From Eutreptiella sp. 'Long Island Sound 2002' (lineage: Eukaryota; Protista; Euglenida): DNA of 64,000 bases. A model generated the notes under the pieces. It saw only the letters and a list, made by a program, of their open reading frames with translations. It was not told the DNA's origin and searched no databases. Location: contig OZ038378.1 in assembly GCA_964036045.1 (NCBI GenBank), positions 164,486,001-164,550,000 on the forward strand, in the 5' to 3' direction. Of the stretch, positions 16,833 to 47,500 are shown one piece after another. Both the position numbers and the translations under genes were made by a program. Position 1 is the first letter of the stretch. Every line of letters starts with the position of its first letter.

Positions 16833-16860
16833 ACTTTTTTTGAGTGTCGATTTTTTTTCC
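16833..16860 (+). other. Euglenid spliced-leader-like relic
   Basis: ACTTTTTTTGAGTGTCGATTTTTTTTCC versus the Euglena SL exon as I recall it, ACTTTCTGAGTGTCTATTTTTTTTCG; 21/24 identical over the 3' 24 nt. Confidence 0.5.
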
Positions 16861-34841: not shown

Positions 34842-37800
34842 TGCATGACGGGGCAGGCACCTCTTCCATCAGCAACATCTCCGGGCAAATCTCCTGGATC
34901 TCCGTCGCTTTCTGGGCCACGAGCTCCTCGGGACTGGGACCACTACTGTCGGACTTCGTGGCGCGGGGCTGGATGGCGACCACCGTGCCCAGCAGCACCT
35001 CGCAGTCCTGCAGCTGGAACGCGATGTTGGCGTTCTCGTGCATCCCGAAGATCTCCGGGTCGTCGTGATGCGGCAGGTTGCCGGCAGTGAACTCCCGATA
35101 GCCCTCCACCTGCGGCATGCGTTCAGGCAACGCAGGCGGGTACACAGGCGAGGGTGCACCCCACGGGCCTTTTGAGGCCCAAGAGGCTGCCTGATTCGGG
35201 ACAGACATCGCCATCCGTCTATGATCATAATCCATCGCACACGCCTGCGCGACACACACGCGCGCGTGCGCACACATGCACAGTTCAGCCGGTGGATATC
35301 GCATCCACAAGGTACCGGGGGGGGCAGGGGGGATATTCCGTGCGGGGGGGGAATATGAATCTACAAATTCTGGCACGAAAAAATCTGCGCCATCTCTTAA
35401 AAATGAGCGAACAAATTATGTATGGTTACCAATAATTGCTCATGAGAAACAGTGGGCGCTTGCAATGCCTAACGTATACCTGCACAAATCCTTAAAAACA
35501 ACGAACAAATTGCGCACAAAAACTTCGTACAGAATTTGAATTGCAGAAATTCTCGCTTGCATAACCCCCGGATACGCGTGGGGGGGGGGGGGGGTCCGCA
35601 GGGTGTGCAGTGGTGTGTTTGCTGAACATGCGCGTCTCCCGGGGGATTCCCGTCTGGTGTTGCCGGGGGCCTCTCGGTACGACCCCCTTTCAGAAAGGCA
35701 TGCGATGTCGAGAAGTGGGGTACTGGACTGGAGGCACACACCGAGAGGGGGACAGGGGGGGGGGAGTATGAGAAGGGGGGGGGGGGGGGGTTGGCACGAG
35801 GCCATGGTGTTAGTCTGTTTGCCTTGGGCGGCGCCTATTGGCCTCTCGCCTTTGCACAGCCTGACCCTCTGCGGGTCCGAACGTGTTTTGGTCGTGTCAA
35901 CGGAGGAGGGGGAGGAGGAGGAGGAGGAGGAGGAGGAGGAGGAGGACCTGCGACCCAGCCCTTGCTGGCCGCACGACTAGCACCGCGAGAAACACGCCAA
36001 TGCTAGCTGGTTCCCGTTAGCTCCGCCTCGCTGAGATGCAGTGGGTCTTTCGCGGTGCATGCAGGAATGTGCCCTAGGACCTTTCGGCTCACATTCCCCC
36101 GCTCACCCTATCCGTGGGTACCCCAACCGAAGCCTGACAGGTGGTAGCCAAGTGGGACAATATGCTCAGCACATACGGTCCTAGCATCAGCATGATCACC
36201 CCGGAATCCAGTTAGCAGTGTGTCCCACAGATTGCTTTCATTGCTTAACTTGCGTAAGGTGATGCTAGTTACAATGGTCTAGTGGCTTCTCTCTTGGAGT
36301 CTGACAATAGTACAGTTCTTGCCAAGGGCACGCGAGCAAACAAAGGCATTCACGACAAGTTCACCAAGGTTCTTCAACCCACTTGTCCATACTGGGTTGA
36401 AACTTCAGTCTATAATCTTGTGTGCTCATCTTGTGAGGTAATCCTAGTAAAGCGAACAGCTGTTGAAATGCCGCCAATAGGGCACGCAACCGTTTGACGG
36501 AATATACTTGTTCTTGTACCACTAAACAAGTGATCATGCGCTGATTCTCTGGATATCCAAACGTCATGCTCCAAAATATGGTACCCTGAAGGTTCGTGCC
36601 TATAACAGGCTTTTCAACCGAATCAATAAGCCATACAGTGGGAACATTGTGTTGTAGCTTGCGCATGTCCCGCATATCTGTGACAAACCAGTATGTGACT
36701 GGTGTGAGCGAGTGCGCCATCAAGCGCATCTTGGGCAAATACACATGAAAATGCATGCGATTTCCTAAGAGGAACAGCAAAGGCGCATGTGGCCACACTA
36801 CCCACACTTCAGGGTATGATGCCCATGAGTGTTTTGGTACTCTGTGCTGGTGCGCGAGTACGAAATGTGTCATGGGTGCCCCATTGAGGGCTGCAAAATC
36901 TTGGGTTTGTAACATGAGAGGCAAGGACGTTGCCTCTCGTAATAACTGCAGAGTGGTAAGTATAAAACCCAACAAACGTTGCTGTTTGGATTCGTTCACT
37001 CCCAGCTTTTCCATAGCATGTGTAGTGTCTGTTGTTGCTCTACCGTCTGGATTGATGCACAAAGAGATGTGATCGACCTGTGCTCCTGGATAATACACAC
37101 AATGCAACAAAATGGTTGCTGCTCCCCTTTGTACCCAAACTCCCCAAGGGGTAGGAATGCAATGTTTCCAGGATGGGATGACATCGGGTATCATGACTGC
37201 CAATTTGGAATAAACCAAATACAGTATTACATCTCTGTATGGGCATTCCTCACACATGTGCCTGGAGGTATTCTGCATTCCACACCAGATGCATTGTGCA
37301 GGATTTGGTTGCCAGATGCCTTGTCTGCATGCCACAGTATGTAGATGTGTGTTCCATTGAATGTGCCCATTCATGAGGGCATTAGCATACAAATCATACA
37401 CTGGCTGTGGGGCACAGTACTCTACATCATGAGACTTACAATACAGCTCGGTCAGCTTGGTGTGCACATACTTGTCCCAATTATGAAACTGCTGACCTTC
37501 ACAAGAAAACGTGATCTGTGGTTCTTGCAATTCGGAAATCCATCCTATGCTTGGCACTTGTGACAGCGCCGTTTCTTTGGCACAGCTATCTACACTGTCT
37601 AGAATGATATCCAACAGTGTACCCTTTCGATGGGAGTAAATATGCACTGGAACTTGATAGTCTTGAGACAGTTGTTTACATGCCTGAAGTAAATCTCTCA
37701 AAATGGGTACAGTTTGCTCTGTATCTGACTGTAGGGCTGTAACATATGACTTAGAATCTGTATATGTATCCGATTTGGTATACCACACTCCATCTTGAGT

Positions 37801-40800
37801 TCCCAGCTTCTTTCTCACCAGGAGTGTTACCCAGGCCACATACATCTCTATGGCAAAAGAGTGGTCTAGGCTGATAGGACAATGTATCGGGTATACTGTG
37901 TATTCCATCGTGTCATAATCACAAATGGCAAGAGCACCTCCTACCCTGCCATCTGATAATCTGGAACCGTCTGTGACAAAGAATGGGCGTTTGGGCAAAA
38001 TCTTGATGTCTGGCAAAATGGCTGGACACGGAACTGAGGGCAACAGATCCACATTCGGTAAACAGAACATCCAATCCGGGATGGGCCAGCCAGCTTTTCT
38101 AGCCGCTGGCAAATTTTTATATCCAGCCGTCATCCATTCATGCATATGCACAGCTTGCCAATCATGTGTGCATTTATACATGTTGATTTGTTCATCGATC
38201 TGCTTGACATATGCTGGGACATGAATGCGAATGTTCATGTGATGGGTGTATTTGAGAAATCTGTCATAATCTGTGCTGTGTGAGGGACACATCTTTCCAA
38301 AGATATCTGGAACACATGGCATGCCTGGATGAAAATTCTGAAAGGCTCTCCATATACCATGAGTAACTGATTTCCGGACCAAAGGGTTTAGATGTCCTGC
38401 CTGCCTCATGATGGTGATGACAAATGTGTGTAACATGGTGACTGTGGCTGGATATATACCAGTCCATCCAGACTGTAATGATTGCATGAAGGAGGCTGAA
38501 GGAATTTGACCCCAATTCGCTACACTCCTAATGGCAGAAGCAGCTGCAAAATCACATAATCTCATGGTGGCATGTGCTGGAGGCCTCACTCCTGCTATCC
38601 ATCGTTGGGAACCTCCTGCACTTGCTGAGTACATAATCAAAGGGTAATTTGCTGGTAGCCTCTCATATCGAAGAGCAATACTTGCTCTTCTGCATGCTGA
38701 TAACAACTTGATACAATCTTGTCGGTGGAAGATATGTGGCAAAACATGTCTTCCCAACAACCTGGCATATTCATTACCGTCTAATAACTGCAGAGTGCTC
38801 CCTCCTGCTCGAAAATCGTGGCCGTGGTATTGTACCTTTCCACCTATCATAGACGCTACTATACCCGTCAGTTTGATTACTGAAGTGTGTAAGTGTGTGT
38901 ATAGCCCTGCTGTCATCTGTCTGTCTAACAATTGCTGCATATCTTTTGCGCATTCCAAAACAAAGGTTGTATCATCCATATATGTGACTCTGAGAAATCT
39001 CCCTCCTGGACTGATTGGTACTGGAACCTGATGAGTGATAATGGCGATGCGCAATTCCAGGAGTAAACAGAAAATCAAAGCTGAAACAGGGCATCCCTGT
39101 GCAATACCTGCCCGAAATGTGGTGATGGCTAATTTCACTCCCTTTTTTCCGCCCATAAAAATTTTTGATTTGGTTGCTGCACCCATAATGATAGTGATCC
39201 ATCGTTCATGAAACCCTGCGAGTCGTAAGATTTGTTCCAATGTGGGGTGCTGAACAGAACCAAAAGCATGACGAATGTCATCTAACACAAGAAAAACTGT
39301 GAGATTTCTGTACCACCTGTCATTAACATGATCATGTATGACCCTCAATACATCATTGGCTGAAGATTTACCCCATAAGGCAAATTGCGTTACTGGTATG
39401 ACCTGAGACTGACACAGAAGATGAGTAACGTGTTTTTTTATACTGGCCGAAAAGATTTTCCACAAAGTGTGGAAATTGAGAAGAGGTCTGGCATTTGCGA
39501 TGGGACCATGAGGTAATTTATTGGGGAGAGCGTAAAAGTCTCCCCAATATATACCGTCCATGTCCCCTCCTGCCAACCATGTGTTGTATAGCTGTACCAA
39601 GTGTAATAACTGCGAATCTGACAAGAAATTCACCATTCGGGCCTCTAACAGGTTTCGAAATGGAGTGGATCGTGGAAACTTTTTGAGCACTTTGCGTAGA
39701 AAACTTACCGTAAGTGTGAGAGGGGGAAATTGAGGGGGATCCCACTGGACCCATTGCAGAATATCATTGCGGTTCATATATAAAGGGGGTGAAAGATGTC
39801 GTTGACGAAATTGATCCAATGCAACCAAACCAATCATGTCTGCATGTGCATTGTGCTGTGATACATATGTAGGCTCAAGTGATGCATTGTATGGTTGTCG
39901 AAATATTTTTCGGTAAAGGGGTTTTCTAGGTGCTTGCGCACCTGCTGACCCCCCCAAATTGTTGAGGGAAACCCGAATCTTGTTCTCCAAATGTATCATA
40001 TCCCATGCTCGCCATATATGTGATCTATGCTTCTGTAACTGCTGTGCCTGTGTTATATGTAACCACCACTGTGGGTGCTCTGTGATGTATGCTTGCATTC
40101 TTTGCATAGCCTTTTGCACTAACATGGGGGTTGAATATGCATCACATGGCTGCCCAAATACCTGCGTGGCTGCCTGTAAAATTGCATGTGTGAAACTTTG
40201 CACCGTGATATCCAATGTGTCTGATGCATGCTGTGTGTATTCTTTATCGAAAACTCTCTGGAAATGAGCCAACTGAGTGGCTGTAATTTCCACAGGTATG
40301 ACATACCTATTGGTAGCATGGGTGCATTCCGGAGGGGGTAATGGGGTCACATCATATATACTCAGAATTAATGGGAAGTGATCAGAAGGGAACGAACAAC
40401 GATGAATCACCTGTGTTATAGGAGGTGTGGTGTGTGTGACGGAAACCATGAAGTGATCCAATGCGCCAACATGCCCCTGTGCTGATACCCATGTGGGTCC
40501 TGGTGATTGTTTCTTTACTGGATGTATGTTGGTATCTAGAAATGCATCGAGTATGGCTTCTGTGCGGGCGGGGCTGGATATGGGACAATCATTATCCCAA
40601 CCCGGATTCTGATTGAAGTCACCACCTACTACAGTGTACCAGTAGGCAGAAATCAAGAATGGTGCAACCCAGTTCAAGGTTGCTCTTATTTCGTGTGCCT
40701 CTGCTTTAGATTTGAGGTACAAATTGACTACCTGAAAGGGTTTGTCATTGTACAAAAAGCGAACCACAATGGCTCGATGATCTGGGGAGAAATGTTGCTC

Positions 40801-43800
40801 TTGCATCTGTATTCCCAACACTCTGCGTAGCAAAATTGCTACTCCCAATGAATTCCGGTCTGTATGCGTGTGAAATGCCATATATAGAGGATGGAACATG
40901 AAATCTGAGGGGAGTTTTCCTATCTCCTGCAACATGACAATGTCTGGGAATTCCATCTCTTTAATCCATACATGTAACTGTTTTGTCTTGTCTCGGATAC
41001 TGATCTGAACATTGAATGATATGCATCGGACCGGCGACGTCTCATGAGGATTTTTTTCTTGGGCAATGCAGTGAGGGACTGATACAATGTCCATTGTGTG
41101 TAACAGGGACTGTCTCAATCTCTGTGGCAATTTTCCGGGTATTTTTAAAATCCTGCGTATGATGCGTGGTTTGAATATTGCCACCATGAGAGTACTGGCT
41201 GCACCTGTGAGCATTGTATGTGTGATGGAATACTGTGTGAACCAGTACATAGGCAATATGAGCGAGTGTCCGGTGGGTACACGAATTGCAAATTGTGTAC
41301 TTGTTTTTGTGCATCCTGAGATCTGCATAGCACCTTTCAGCTGAATGTAATAAAGCACATCAGCCCATTGAGTTAACAATGGAGCTGGCTGGTGTGTGTG
41401 CTTGAAATAATGGATGTGTATCAATCCAGCAGGGACTGGCAAAAGAGACAGAAGTTCTGCAGGAACTTCTCGGAAACTTACACACCGGTTGTTCTGAAAC
41501 TGAAAACCCCACTGACTGTCAATGGCATTCCCAGTCAGAGGAGACACATACAATATTACTTGCTGTATCGGAAATTCCGACGGAAAGGGAACTGAATCTG
41601 GGGGGCTTTTAAGGTTGCCAGGGGTTTGGCCATCCTTGCTGTTCAGGTGTAGATGGCCAGGCATGGTTATGTACCGGTGCTTGTTGTGGTGCCCAATGAT
41701 GCTGTGCATGCTGATGGGGTTGCCAGCCACTTGTGGTGGGAGGGCGAAAATGCTGTGGATTGGTATCTTTTACCCTCCTGTCTGGTGATGGGGACCTGGA
41801 TCTAGAACGAGAGTAATGTTTCTTTCCGTTTTTCTTTCGTTTTGGAGATCGTGATTTCGATCTGGATCGGCTCCGCTTCTTCTTGTGTGAGTTCTCCTTC
41901 TTTTTTGTACTGCTCTCTCTCCGATTTTTGTGGTCATCGGATTGATCCGATTCACTTGAATCATCATTCCCTTTTTTTTGTTTCTTTTTTCCAGATGAAT
42001 GGCTGGCTTCTGGCGTAAAATATGAGGCTTGATGAAATCCCCTGGGAACCCATGGGGACCAGGGTTGTTTGGTGGCTTTTTTCCAATTGATTCGCCACCC
42101 TGAAACGACTGTCATACCTGGTGTATTGGCTTGATCTTTTCCGTCCTCTGAGACTCCTAACATACAGAAAGACCGTGTGCCTTTCACTGAGTCATCTGTG
42201 ATGGAGCACAGGTTTTTTCCGAATACTGGTCTTAATGCAGTGCCCAAAATCCGGGCAGATATATCATGCTCTGGGGGGTCCATCACTGCATTCCATGCCA
42301 CAAGGATACATATAGGAAATTTTGCAGGGTCTGATGACCTGGATTGAGATGTCTGTGCTGCTTGTTGATTTCTGTGTTCTGCCTGCTTGACAATGGTATG
42401 ACCCGTCGAGATCGGGTCTTGGGGGGTTTCCTGCTCTGCCTGTGTGAAGAAATCTTTGATAACATGATCCAATTTGGGATGTGTAGTATGCATGTTGAGA
42501 GTGTTCCATTGCTCATGTAGATCCATAGGTGAGAGGTTACGAATCTCTGGTATGTTCAGGCTGACCGTCATGTGGAGCTTTTTGGCAAAGCCACTGATTT
42601 TCTCTGTAGGCTGGTGATTGATCCATTTCAATAGTTTGTGCATAGGCGGTGAACCTGGAATCTGTGTTTTTACTGTAGGAACTGGTGTTTTATCTTGAGC
42701 TGACTGAGGTGTGTTGTGTGTGGGTGACTCTCCTACTGGATCAGTATCATTCAAATACTTCAGTAAGTTTACTGTAGTGGGCCTGTGCTCTGGTATGAGT
42801 GCTGTGATAATGGGAAGCAAGTCCTGCCTGATACCTGTGACTGCTAAAAAAGTTGAGACAAGAGGAACAGAAGCCATATATTTGGCATGGAGTGGGGGGA
42901 GACACGTGAAATTTTCGGGAGAAGACTCTTTCAAGAGGTCCACCAGACTTGGGGACGGTGGGCCTTCCCACTCACTTGCTTTCTGTCTGATTCTGACCAA
43001 CATGGCGAATGCATTTGCGAAGTTCTCTGTGAGCTGTGGAAGCGTTAGTTCAGCTGTTTCGGATCTGTCTCTCATTTCTTGAAGCTCTGCTTGTAGAATC
43101 TTGATAGTGCTCTGCAATTCTTCGATCTGTTTGTTTTGCAATTTTATCGTGTTCTCTGCTTGCCGATGTTGCGTCTTGATATGATCCAGGTCCGCCTTGG
43201 TTGTTTCCAATCTTTGAGCATTCATACGCTGTGTGAAATGCTCCGGAATGAGAGGTTCTTCCTCTTTCTGCGAAAAACCATCATCCAATGCCTGCAATAG
43301 GTCTGCACTCGTTCTGCTTGTTTTCTTCATGTCCAGCAAATTGGGGCTGTTTAGCAAGTTGATATAGTTGTCCTTTGGCTTGAGCAATGCTGCAGTAGGA
43401 GCAGTAATCCATGAAGGTTTTTCCCCAGGCCAGGCTTCTTCAAAAACCGCTTCTGTTGCCACTTCCAAGATGGATTGGCGAATGATATCTTGAGCTTTGT
43501 TCTGGTTCATCGCTTGTACGATTCCCTTGTTTCTGAGTGCATTTTGCTTGTGCGGAGGAGCCAATTTATCACTTGCCCATGCCAACAGATGATGATAAAT
43601 TTGCAGATAATCCGATCGTGTGACAGTGGCAGTGCCTGTGAATGGTACAGTGTCTGGTAATCGGAACAGTTGTTCCTGAATACACTGTAGCCCAGACTTT
43701 TGTAATTCCCCCCATATTGTCTTGAGATGTACAGGAAGAGACTGTTCCATTGGTGTCAGCACAATGTTCTTGAAGAGTGTAGTATTCACCTTCTTGTATT

Positions 43801-44502
43801 CTTGTCCCTTAATCTGCAGGAGCTTGCCAAATGTATCCTTGATCTCACTGTTCTCGATCTTTCGATACGTTTGATCCCACATCTTGACAATATTTTTAAT
43901 TGATGGTAGCTGCACTTGTATGTGTGCCAAAAGAGCTGGAGAGCGGGCTAGAGCGATTGGTATGTGTTCCACTTGCTGCTTCTTCTTTTCTTGCATGACT
44001 TCAGCTGTCACAGTGATCAGGTATCCTTGTGGGGCCAATAGTACATTTATGCTGGAGACATAACTGATCTTGCCGACTATGGTAATCCATCTGAGAGCAT
44101 CACAGAGAGCTTGTACTTGTATTCCAGGCGCGAATGCAGTTGGTAAAGCACTTTCAGCTTCCTTGTACACATGAGCAGGAATGAGATCAATGTACTCTGT
44201 GAGAAGTCTCTGTAACTCTGGGTCTGATGAGTCTGCAAGCAGCTGCAACAAAGAAGCTTGATAGGGGACATGTTCCATGTCTGTACACGGGACATGTAGG
44301 AAGTGATGTACTGAGGGAAATTTGTTCACTGATGAACCTGATTGACACATGACAATATATGTGTATCATATATTGTATAGCTTGTTGAAGAGTAAGGAAA
44401 GGGAAACACTGGCCGCATGGGGTATGTTCTGATGAACACAGAGCCACTCTGGCTATTCTATGATAGTGAAACTGACCGCACGGGTTGCACTGTGTGCCTT
44501 TC

Positions 44503-44534
<32 letters not shown>

Positions 44535-47500
44535 CTCTAAGTCTGGTATCTCCAATCGTCTACATTATTACTCACTACGCTGTCGGTTGCCACGTGCTTC
44601 AGCGGGAAGACGCTGGAGCTCCACTCGCGGGATCCTGGTTCGATTCCCGGCCACCACGAGCAGTTTCCGCCGCTCGTGGTGGCTCACGGACGGGTGGTGT
44701 GGCAACCTCCCGCCACCTGTGGGCGGTGGCGGGGCGCACTGCTGCAGGCAGTGGGCAGGCATTTTTTTCTCCTGATCAGGACCAAAAAAGGGGGTTTGTC
44801 AAAAGAGAAGCTAAAAGAGAAGCTAAAAGAGAAGCAACATCCCAAAGTGGCTCCGGTCACTCATGTCTGTACCAAAACGGGAGACGTCGCGGCCTTCTGT
44901 CAGTTGTGGGCGGTGGCTGGGCGCACTGCAGTCAGTGGGAGTCGAACCGACGATCTTTCTGTTGACGAGTCTATGTTGTACCACTAGGCCGCTCCGTCTC
45001 CATGCCGTAGTCACGCATACCGGTTGCACTCGGATCTTGCAGAAAAAGGAAACTAAGCTATCAAGTCGCACCCAGGGCTCAGTGCCGCAGAGCATCCACA
45101 GGCACCGGCGCCAGCTTTACTTTGGGGGTAGTGTACACTCCCCAGGGATCATGCACACGGGCTTGGCGGTTCCACTGTACACAATATTATCAATATCTCT
45201 AAGGGGTCTTGTGTGTTTAGAATCTGCTGGTCCCCCCTTATTGACATTGGTAATAGTGGACCCGTGCTCCCTGCTTCGTACTGCCATCTGTTGAGTGTCT
45301 TGTCGCTCCCCTTTTCCGGTCTGTTGGCGCAGTTCTGAGCACTGTCGGGCCCTCACACCACGTCAAGGTCACCGGCCCTAGGGTCTGAGTAGGGCGTGAG
45401 GGTACGGAGCCCCCGGGGGGGGGGGGGGGCTCCTCCTGCAGCGTACACACTTCCCAGGGACAAGGGATGGCACAGACCGTCAAGAGGTGCGGCATGGCGT
45501 AGACGCCGCTCGGCGACAGCGCGTACCCGTCCGCCAGCAGCTCCTCCCGCATGAAGTTCTGGAGGCAGGACAGCAGCGTCCGGCGGTCCCACGGGTCTGT
45601 GACCCGGCCGCCGTAGACGATCTGCCCGATGACGTACCGCAGGGCCTCCCACGGGATCTCGCTGTTCTCCTGCAGGAACATCTGCAGCCACTGCGTCCCC
45701 ACGCTCAGGTCCGTGTCGTTGAACTCGTACTTGTTGTTCCAGCCCAACGGCCCAAACTGAGCGACGCACGCAATGCGGAGGGGGGCCCGCGGGGCATTGC
45801 ACGTTGCCTGCGGCTGAGCGGTTGTTCCAGAGACGGGGGATGTGGGGGGAGGGGGGGGGGGAGGTGGCATATTCGAATCCCGATGAACTCTGAGCACCTT
45901 GACCACACAAAATTGGGGGGGGGGGGGATGGCCAGAGTGCTCCTTCAAAAAGGGGGGGGGGGGGTTCCTGGAACCCAAAAGTCCGAAAGTTTGTGTACCA
46001 AAAAACGCCCAAATCAATATTTCCTTTCGTAAAATTTCATTTTTTCCCACGATGAACTCCGGGTCAGAGAAGGCCCCCCCCCCGGAGGAGACGCTGAGGT
46101 GCTAAGCAAAACTCTGGGGATGGCCCAAATTGTCCAAAACGGGAGGCAGCTGGTACCTTCTGAGGTCCAGGTGAGACAGCAGCGGATAGTACTGAGTGGC
46201 AGGGGCTGAGTGCTACAATGTGTGGGTAGCGACCACACAGTCGATGGCGACTCAAACCAAATACCAATGCAATACGCCACCAACGCCTGTGCCTGAGAGG
46301 AGGGTGTGCCATAGACAGAGGGCGTTGGGGGAAGGGGGGAGGGGGGCGGCTGTGGACTTCCCGGTCTTCGCCCTCTCTTTGTCTCTTTGAGGCCCTCCTC
46401 CACCGGGGCCTGGCGGGCGTAGAAGCGCGCGCGACCCCCGCCGACCCAAACGCCAGAAGTGGAGGGCAGCGGCTGTGCGCACACCATCTCCACTCGCCCC
46501 AGTGACGCGGCTGCCCAGATGCACATGTGCCCCCTGACAGGCCCCAGGCCGCGCCACTGCCTCCCTCACTGACGCCGAATCTGGCGTATCGGCCGGGGGG
46601 CGTCTGGATAGACTCCCTGCGCCTCACCCACCGAATATCGGTCGAAAGGGGGGTGGAGGGCAGCAGGGGGTATGCTGCCGCTTTGGTGCCGCCCTGGGGG
46701 TGCGGACCCCCAGGGCAGTAGGGCGTACGTGGCCCATTGGATTCTTGCACGCCGTGGGGGACCTCGGGCTGGCCGGGGTCACATGGCCTTTTTGATTCCC
46801 CCCCCCACCTTGGGTATGCAACCCAAACGGAGGCACACAGTCGGGACCAGTCCAAACACTTTAATACGATTCTTACTATCATCACAATCAAAACAATCAA
46901 CATGTTGTCCAAACAAGTTTGCAGTCAAATTCTAAACACAAAAAAGCATCGGACAGATTAACAGACCTGCACAAAAAAAAAAACGCACCTATCAGTTAAG
47001 ACATCTGAGATCCATCAAGGCGGAGTCAGTATGCCGGTTGCTAAATCCGGGTGTGTATACTTGTTCACTTTTGGGGGGGGTCCTCCAAAAAGGGGGGGGG
47101 GGCTGGGGTGAACTATCAAAAGTGGGGTAAGTTTGCCAGTTTGTATTCCCACTTGGGTGTGTGTTGTAGCGGCGTGCCTCCGAGCTCTTGGGACGTGTGT
47201 GGGGAGGGTATCTGTGTTTTGGAAGGGGAGGGGTGGGCGTGTGGTGTTCGGCTGCGTGGGGAATCTGTCCCACTGCTCACCATTGCAGCTTTCGTGGGGT
47301 GTTCCCAAGGCTTGTCCAGAGGGGGACAGCGCATGCGGCTGGATGCTGCCTAACAACTCCACATCTAGGCCCTCCCTAGTACACCCCAACGGGCGTAGGC
47401 CATTTGCCAAAGCGTACGTTCCAAGTGGTACTCCTCCGTTTTGGGGAGCCCCGGTAGACATGGTGCTTTGTGTCGCAGGCAGAGGCGTCGGGATTCGGTG

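Follow-up and report, generated by a model that had tools for sequence, protein, structure and literature searches.

In the genome of the euglenid Eutreptiella sp. 'Long Island Sound 2002', a long interspersed nuclear element (LINE) places an additional domain in front of the apurinic/apyrimidinic (AP) endonuclease of its second open reading frame (ORF2). The element lies on the minus strand of a stretch of 64,000 nucleotides (contig OZ038378.1, positions 164,486,001 to 164,550,000 of the forward strand), hereafter the window, to which all coordinates without a locus or contig name refer. The N-terminal stretch of ORF2 is a real domain under selection, and its amino acids (aa) 41-187 probably adopt an AlkB-type pseudo-enzyme fold, kept by selection as an N-terminal ORF2 module beside the endonuclease. 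The element is laid out as follows.

Minus strand of the window: complete two-ORF LINE, with ORF1 followed by ORF2, a 3' untranslated region and a simple-repeat tail.
41609..44350, minus strand: ORF1, 913 aa, from the ORF list; stop codon TAA at 41611-41609; the tail of the protein is basic and Ser/Arg-rich.
36361..41730, minus strand: ORF2, 1789 aa as a mechanical ORF, from the ORF list and Pfam; stop codon TGA at 36363-36361.
41662..41664, minus strand: ATG, probable start codon of ORF2 (M23 of the mechanical ORF).
41170..41610, minus strand: predicted AlkB-like double-stranded beta-helix domain, ORF2 aa 41-187, equal to model residues 1-147.
41083..41169, minus strand: linker between domain and endonuclease, ORF2 aa 188-216, with two basic helices predicted at residues 148-155 and 163-176.
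40369..41019, minus strand: AP endonuclease, ORF2 aa 238-454 (PF03372, E 1.9e-08; PF14529, E 3.4e-07).
38869..39495, minus strand: reverse transcriptase, ORF2 aa 746-954 (PF00078, E 5.7e-10).
36364..38865, minus strand: C-terminal 834 aa of ORF2 (aa 956-1789), without a recognised family.
35902..36360, minus strand: 3' untranslated region, whose tail is (TCC)n (about 35945-35902) in place of poly(A).

PF03372, PF14529 and PF00078 follow one another in that order within one ORF that overlaps ORF1 upstream, and the element exists in many dispersed copies, part of them near-identical and intact, with a simple-repeat 3' tail; both features identify a LINE with an AP endonuclease. ORF2 is in the +1 frame relative to ORF1, which it overlaps by 56 nt. 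All in-frame ATGs of ORF2 before aa 135 fall within this overlap, none lying between the ORF1 stop and aa 135. A start at M23 fits a public protein, P0001, of 1767 aa (1789 minus 22), and in the divergent family b a Met aligns with M23 ('RDM'). About 230 residues thus precede the endonuclease in the mechanical ORF, or about 215 if translation begins at M23. The first 237 residues of ORF2 match no Pfam family. The original prediction, made by eye from the sequence, had pointed to some 230 residues ahead of the endonuclease, and indeed the first Pfam domain of ORF2 is the AP endonuclease at 238-454. The strings it quoted lie where it placed them (QWGFQF at ORF2 aa 73-78, 41514-41497; STLMVAIFK at aa 179-187, 41196-41170), and the range it gave, 41167-41523, covers ORF2 aa 70-188, which are model residues 30-148 and form the beta-sheet core of the predicted domain.

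With ORF2 aa 41-235 as query, six-frame searching of the organism's own 2.28 Gb assembly returned no fewer than 149 matches, among them about 45 copies that are 96-100% identical to the query. Of these, 21 share the same 1802-aa open frame, so the LINE family is young; the other matches range from 59% down to about 21% identity. From 40 divergent genomic places we built an alignment of 34 sequences, restricted to natural open frames and referred to as A1. It spans five or more divergent LINE families, whose identity to the window copy is 21-38%. In unbroken copies the domain and the endonuclease occupy a single frame (for example loci L031/L032, L033, L049, L050, L058/L059 and L066). Between copies of different subfamilies, the Nei-Gojobori ratio of non-synonymous to synonymous substitution (dN/dS) of the domain was 0.10-0.51; where the same copy pairs were compared, it was 0.13-0.45 for the domain and 0.05-0.39 for the endonuclease. 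The domain is therefore constrained, somewhat less so than the catalytic endonuclease. A hidden Markov model (HMM), searched exhaustively against 1.84 billion cluster representatives, added 110 homologues, all unnamed fragments and mostly from ENA assemblies. In one decayed copy of a sister family (L036:466-2100), the AlkB-like domain shares its frame with the tail of ORF1, whereas the endonuclease occupies another. Intact relatives such as L032 keep the domain in frame with the endonuclease, and the shift in L036 probably arose from indels; this copy shows how easily the domain could change ORF.

Sequence of the LINE is also present outside the assembly, in estuary metagenomes and in runs of two organisms. 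In three estuary metatranscriptome libraries, contigs cover parts of the element. One contig of 597 nt (41314-41910) is free of joints; it takes in the stop codon of ORF1 and the start of ORF2 and reaches into the domain, of which it covers the first two-thirds.

The assignment to AlkB comes from the predicted structure. On the single sequence, AlphaFold returned a predicted local distance difference test score (pLDDT) of 31; supplied with the A1 alignment, AlphaFold2 reached a pLDDT of 82.8 and a predicted template-modelling score of 0.77, with the five models at 78-83. The model runs through a helix, a hairpin, a second helix, seven further strands and two C-terminal helices, which together describe a double-stranded beta-helix, and this core carries the N-terminal helix and hairpin typical of AlkB. 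In an exhaustive comparison with 48,161 representatives of the PDB, ranks 1-12 were all occupied by AlkB-family proteins (Z 8.8-10.7), including ALKBH5 (Z 10.7, 147 residues, 3.3 Å), ALKBH6, FTO, rice ALKBH1, Ofd2, ALKBH3, NMAD-1, ALKBH7, ALKBH8, mouse ABH1 and E. coli AlkB. These chains align over 133-163 residues, the core of the domain being about 150 residues long, whereas generic cupins reached Z of at most 8.6 with just 90-104 residues aligned. When the top 1000 chains from Foldseek were given a second look, all 50 of the 50 listed entries were AlkB homologues, the best being zebrafish ALKBH5 (Z 11.3, 151 residues, 3.5 Å). Foldseek itself, run against the PDB, mixed AlkB with other oxygenases and cupins (E about 4e-5 to 3e-4). 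The ESM Atlas structure search ranked a bacterial AlkB cluster first (TM 0.59), and the top matches in BFVD were AlkB domains of closterovirus and flexivirus replicases, phage AlkB and giant-virus 2-oxoglutarate (2OG) oxygenases. For a model-based assignment, Z values of 10-11 with near-complete coverage and a homogeneous list of matches are good, not overwhelming, evidence for an AlkB fold.

Several points weigh against this assignment or limit the evidence around it. At the level of sequence the domain does not match PF13532: in none of the 34 A1 members did Pfam report a 2OG family at E<=1, and the weakest public homologues likewise gave no Pfam match. A profile search of all PDB sequences came back blank at E<=10. 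Aligned by hhalign with A2, a set of nine true AlkB domains of the same genome, A1 scored a probability of 0.12% (0.06% in a 75-sequence version), which is not significant. Unmatched models often reach Z 7-8, so that the values of 10-11 obtained here lie moderately above that level, and the predicted fold draws on 34 sequences, all from a single genome. Places with an ORF1-like sequence and places with PF13532 shared no locus among the matches listed (150 of about 1100 candidates each), which says little. The contigs from RNA libraries, finally, may stem from contaminating DNA.

Other searches at the sequence level were also negative. An ESM Atlas search by language-model features gave no usable match, and an HMM made from the genome's own AlkB domains found no copy in the window or in loci L001-L070. 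The non-significant hhalign alignments are collinear and follow the register of the original prediction, setting QWG on the YG region, HIHY on NxY, YYIQLKG on SxSLG and VPTGHSLI on LxSGxxV; the best local alignment does so for two motifs, D.PI.S.SLG and L.SG..V. The agreement deserves mention but proves nothing. In view of the missing similarity to 2OG oxygenases at any significant level, descent from AlkB rests on the structural ranking together with the genomic context.

That context is a genome in which the true AlkB domain is itself a repeat. Among 1108 first-look candidates, at least 151 matches to PF13532 exceed the Pfam cut-off, all of them intronless and many in open frames of 500-1546 aa, often of about 1000-1150 aa. 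Four example places are

G000:C27:18044775-18045197, PF13532 match;
G000:C5:113707180-113707626, PF13532 match;
G000:C23:27144785-27145231, PF13532 match;
G000:C4:35423924-35424370, PF13532 match.

The matches listed include frames of about 1027-1031 aa, the size of ORF1-like frames elsewhere in the genome. Beside the twelve best readable matches nothing resembles ORF1 or ORF2 of this LINE. A link between the dead domain and the AlkB-bearing repeats of the genome is a hypothesis. Among those twelve is an intronless frame of 683 aa (L073:826-2874, G000:C17:12019649-12020257), set in very GC-rich DNA, which has a complete AlkB domain (E 2e-24) and, at its C terminus, a CCCH zinc finger; this frame is probably a cellular gene.

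The foremost alternative is that the double-stranded beta-helix has another origin, of the cupin, JmjC, prolyl-hydroxylase or TET/JBP type, and that its likeness to AlkB reflects a common fold and not descent. The missing sequence signal to AlkB would suit such an origin, and cupins, pirins, P4H, NgTET1 and YcfD also reach Z 7-8.7 or Foldseek E of about 1e-4 to 1e-5. Base J occurs in euglenozoan DNA, where it is made by TET/JBP enzymes, which also speaks for this alternative. We nevertheless regard it as unlikely: AlkB homologues hold every top rank in four independent libraries, AlkB aligns over almost all of the 150-residue core, N-terminal helix and hairpin included, where cupins cover about 90-100 residues, and the genome is rich in AlkB domains. 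On the favoured reading the domain would descend from a true AlkB domain.

Whatever its ancestry, the domain does not carry the residues on which AlkB chemistry depends. No column is conserved as His, Asp or Glu in the 34 A1 members or in the 110 public homologues, and the HxD/E...H iron triad is accordingly missing; judged from these residues, none of the sampled families has a canonical Fe(II)/2OG oxygenase in this domain. The RxxxxxR arginines that bind 2OG are not found either: the window copy has STLMVAIF as its last strand, and other families have LLYANF, AVLISIL or LTLLLTVL. In the true AlkB domains of the genome (A2), H105, D107, H161, R187, SLG and R(I/L)NxTFR are fully or almost fully conserved. 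In the hhalign alignment, collinear but non-significant, L78 and T80 stand opposite the HxD of AlkB, a placement that is approximate; the segment at this position is about 7 residues shorter than in AlkB and is predicted to form a short helix (residues 77-82). No column of A1 is invariant. Those that come close are G35, Q90, G93, L119 and R126, to which the public homologues add W34, P50, P120 and S138 as conserved positions. R126 is replaced by Gln in the family of the window LINE itself.

These data bear on most of what the original prediction had read from the sequence. Loss of the HxD dyad and of the 2OG arginines was borne out, as no sampled family keeps the HxD...H triad or the two arginines; the examination of further genomic copies that it had proposed gave the same answer, none of the 34 A1 members showing a conserved HxD...H or RxxxxxR. 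Its distal His, said to be retained, did not hold: H131 (in YSITHTM) is not conserved, the His residues of family b stand one and four columns off, families c, d and e have none, and the 110 public homologues contain no His-dominated column. The motif-by-motif matches to AlkB were not beyond chance, given the missing Pfam and PDB-profile matches and the hhalign probabilities of 0.12% and 0.06%. Of the proposed AlkB/2OG fold, the structural part stands, with a confidently predicted double-stranded beta-helix whose nearest relative is AlkB; the profile match that should accompany it is absent.

We propose that the domain acts without chemistry, its likeliest role being that of a basic module that binds single-stranded nucleic acid or recognises a base. 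The isoelectric point of the core is 8.4-11.6 in 34/34 A1 members, and two basic helices that follow the core lead into the endonuclease, their basic pattern kept across families. Proteins with the AlkB fold generally bind nucleic acid in single-stranded form, with one base flipped into the jelly-roll. A non-catalytic role with nucleic acid is favoured because of the basic core and helices, the nucleic-acid binding of the AlkB fold and the precedent of the orchid mutant H448A described below; by analogy, such a role is plausible. The module would hold the LINE RNA or the nicked target strand next to the endonuclease during target-primed reverse transcription.

A more specific version can be offered as speculation that we consider unlikely. 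The dead AlkB fold might serve as a 'reader' that recognises a modified base without removing it, either N6-methyladenosine (m6A) or N1-methyladenosine (m1A) on LINE RNA, or marks of the base J or 5-hydroxymethyluracil type in euglenid DNA. Such a reader would select the template or the integration site, or shield the RNA from epitranscriptomic control by the host, and it would have arisen from an active AlkB when the boundary between ORF1 and ORF2 moved and catalysis was then lost.

Binding of nucleic acid is not the only way in which a dead fold could be useful. The domain could instead be a protein-protein adaptor or structural brace that docks the ORF1 protein or a host factor, or stabilises the endonuclease, with no role in nucleic-acid binding. 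Its conserved residues are mostly Gly, Pro, Leu and Trp and look structural, and the sole conserved residue of the pocket, R126, is Gln in the window family. Set against this are the uniformly basic isoelectric point, the basic helices present in all families and the general affinity of AlkB-fold proteins for nucleic acids, and we give the adaptor or brace a small chance, below that of a helix of other origin. Smaller by far is the chance that the domain is still an enzyme, using non-canonical ligands or another cofactor. His is indeed frequent in it, with up to 13 per copy; columns 65, 85 and 115 are His in 38-49% of homologues, the maximum of 49% being reached where the window copy has Val. 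An active site would, however, be conserved across families, which no His, Asp or Glu column is, and the window family lacks even the conserved R126. That there is no domain at all, merely a spacer open by chance or an AlphaFold artefact, is the least credible alternative: the single-sequence fold at pLDDT 31 and the failure of the language-model search to recognise anything would fit it, but all five models reach 78-83 once an alignment is supplied, and the spacer reading is refuted by the selection and conservation data, with dN/dS at 0.10-0.51 and the stretch in frame with the endonuclease in many families 21-38% identical.

Outside the N-terminal domain, the element has both familiar and unassigned parts. 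The reverse transcriptase of ORF2 shows weak matches to those of R2 and of human L1 ORF2p. In the last 834 aa of ORF2 no Pfam family was detected at E<=0.1, RNase H included; by eye, aa 956-1789 contain a DGS...G.G stretch resembling RNase H and a CxxC...HxxxxC motif. ORF1 matches no Pfam family above the cut-off. It is intact in about 35 genomic copies (open frame 918 aa), and its best-conserved part, aa 660-800 (41951-42373, minus strand), carries the motif GWR[IV]NWKKAxxQPWxPW and is common to all LINE families sampled, with identity of up to 62% in divergent families over aa 672-792. Residues 671-797 of ORF1 match open frames of 1027-1031 aa elsewhere at 30-33% identity, these frames being about 110 aa longer than the ORF1 of the window. 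Scanning Joint Genome Institute (JGI) metagenomes with an ORF1 alignment found no relatives, and word-index protein searches with the N-terminal domain, reverse transcriptase and ORF1 regions as queries gave matches confined to this family.

A group of three ORF1-like matches, all on one strand, fits within 17 kb at G000:C16:39626410-39643779; the open frames that contain them measure 2482, 1427 and 1253 aa. The group could be a tandem array, or else a sister LINE in which ORF1 and ORF2 are fused. On the strand of the window LINE and just upstream of it, an open frame at 45238-46050 (minus strand) encodes a dynein heavy-chain AAA-lid domain (PF18198, E 5e-33). The DNA around this frame has 58-64% GC versus 44% in the LINE, which may lie within or beside a dynein gene. 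Elsewhere in the window, the 24-mer TTTTTGAGTGTCGATTTTTTTTCC at 16837-16860 (plus strand) has 3 mismatches to the spliced leader of Euglena gracilis, with 0 such matches expected by chance. It could be what remains of a retrocopy or retroelement that had been trans-spliced, and it speaks for a euglenid host. The dinoflagellate spliced leader is absent from the window and from the retrieved loci, and a dinoflagellate host was rejected on that ground.

ORF2 proteins of LINEs are usually described as an endonuclease and a reverse transcriptase with few accessory modules. Full-text literature searches turned up the AlkB of an orchid long terminal repeat (LTR) retrotransposon and no account of a domain resembling AlkB or another oxygenase in ORF2 of a LINE. 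That an entire group of LINE families retains, under purifying selection, an AlkB-fold pseudo-enzyme joined to the endonuclease suggests a benefit of the fold to the element that does not depend on chemistry. The domain also illustrates a situation in which searches with profiles miss what the protein contains, and only a structure predicted from paralogues within the genome brings it to light.

Compared with the AlkB family proper (ALKBH5, ALKBH6, FTO, ALKBH1/2/3/7/8 and E. coli AlkB; PF13532), the LINE domain agrees in predicted fold and topology over about 145-150 residues (Z 9-11.3, 3.3-3.5 Å), with helix, hairpin and jelly-roll strands in matching order and a collinear, non-significant sequence alignment. 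It differs in having no PF13532 match, no HxD...H and no RxxxxxR, in its shorter HxD loop, and in an identity of 5-15% to solved AlkB structures. The AlkB domains of plant RNA virus replicases (Closteroviridae, Betaflexiviridae) are its top BFVD matches (GLRaV-1 and GLRaV-3, that is, grapevine leafroll-associated viruses 1 and 3, Little cherry virus 2 and vitiviruses; E 1e-6 to 1e-4), and they too are AlkB-fold modules within the replication protein of a selfish element. Viral AlkB domains retain the motifs needed for catalysis and are credited with repair or demethylation of the viral RNA. The LINE domain, in contrast, would by its residues be unable to work through repair or demethylation.

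RNA methylation is an emerging layer of retrotransposon control. Effects of m6A on LINE-1 and endogenous retroviruses have been reviewed (PMC9289625). Ty3/Gypsy LTR retrotransposons of Phalaenopsis orchids carry an AlkB (2OG-dependent dioxygenase, 2-ODD) domain that is an active m6A demethylase in vitro and whose RNA binding survives mutation of a catalytic His, H448A (PMC9289625). As in the LINE, an AlkB-type module there rides on a retroelement, and H448A sets a precedent for non-catalytic binding of RNA. The orchid domain lies in an extra ORF of an LTR element, is detected by sequence searches and is active; its counterpart in the LINE is fused to a non-LTR endonuclease and is missing the catalytic residues.

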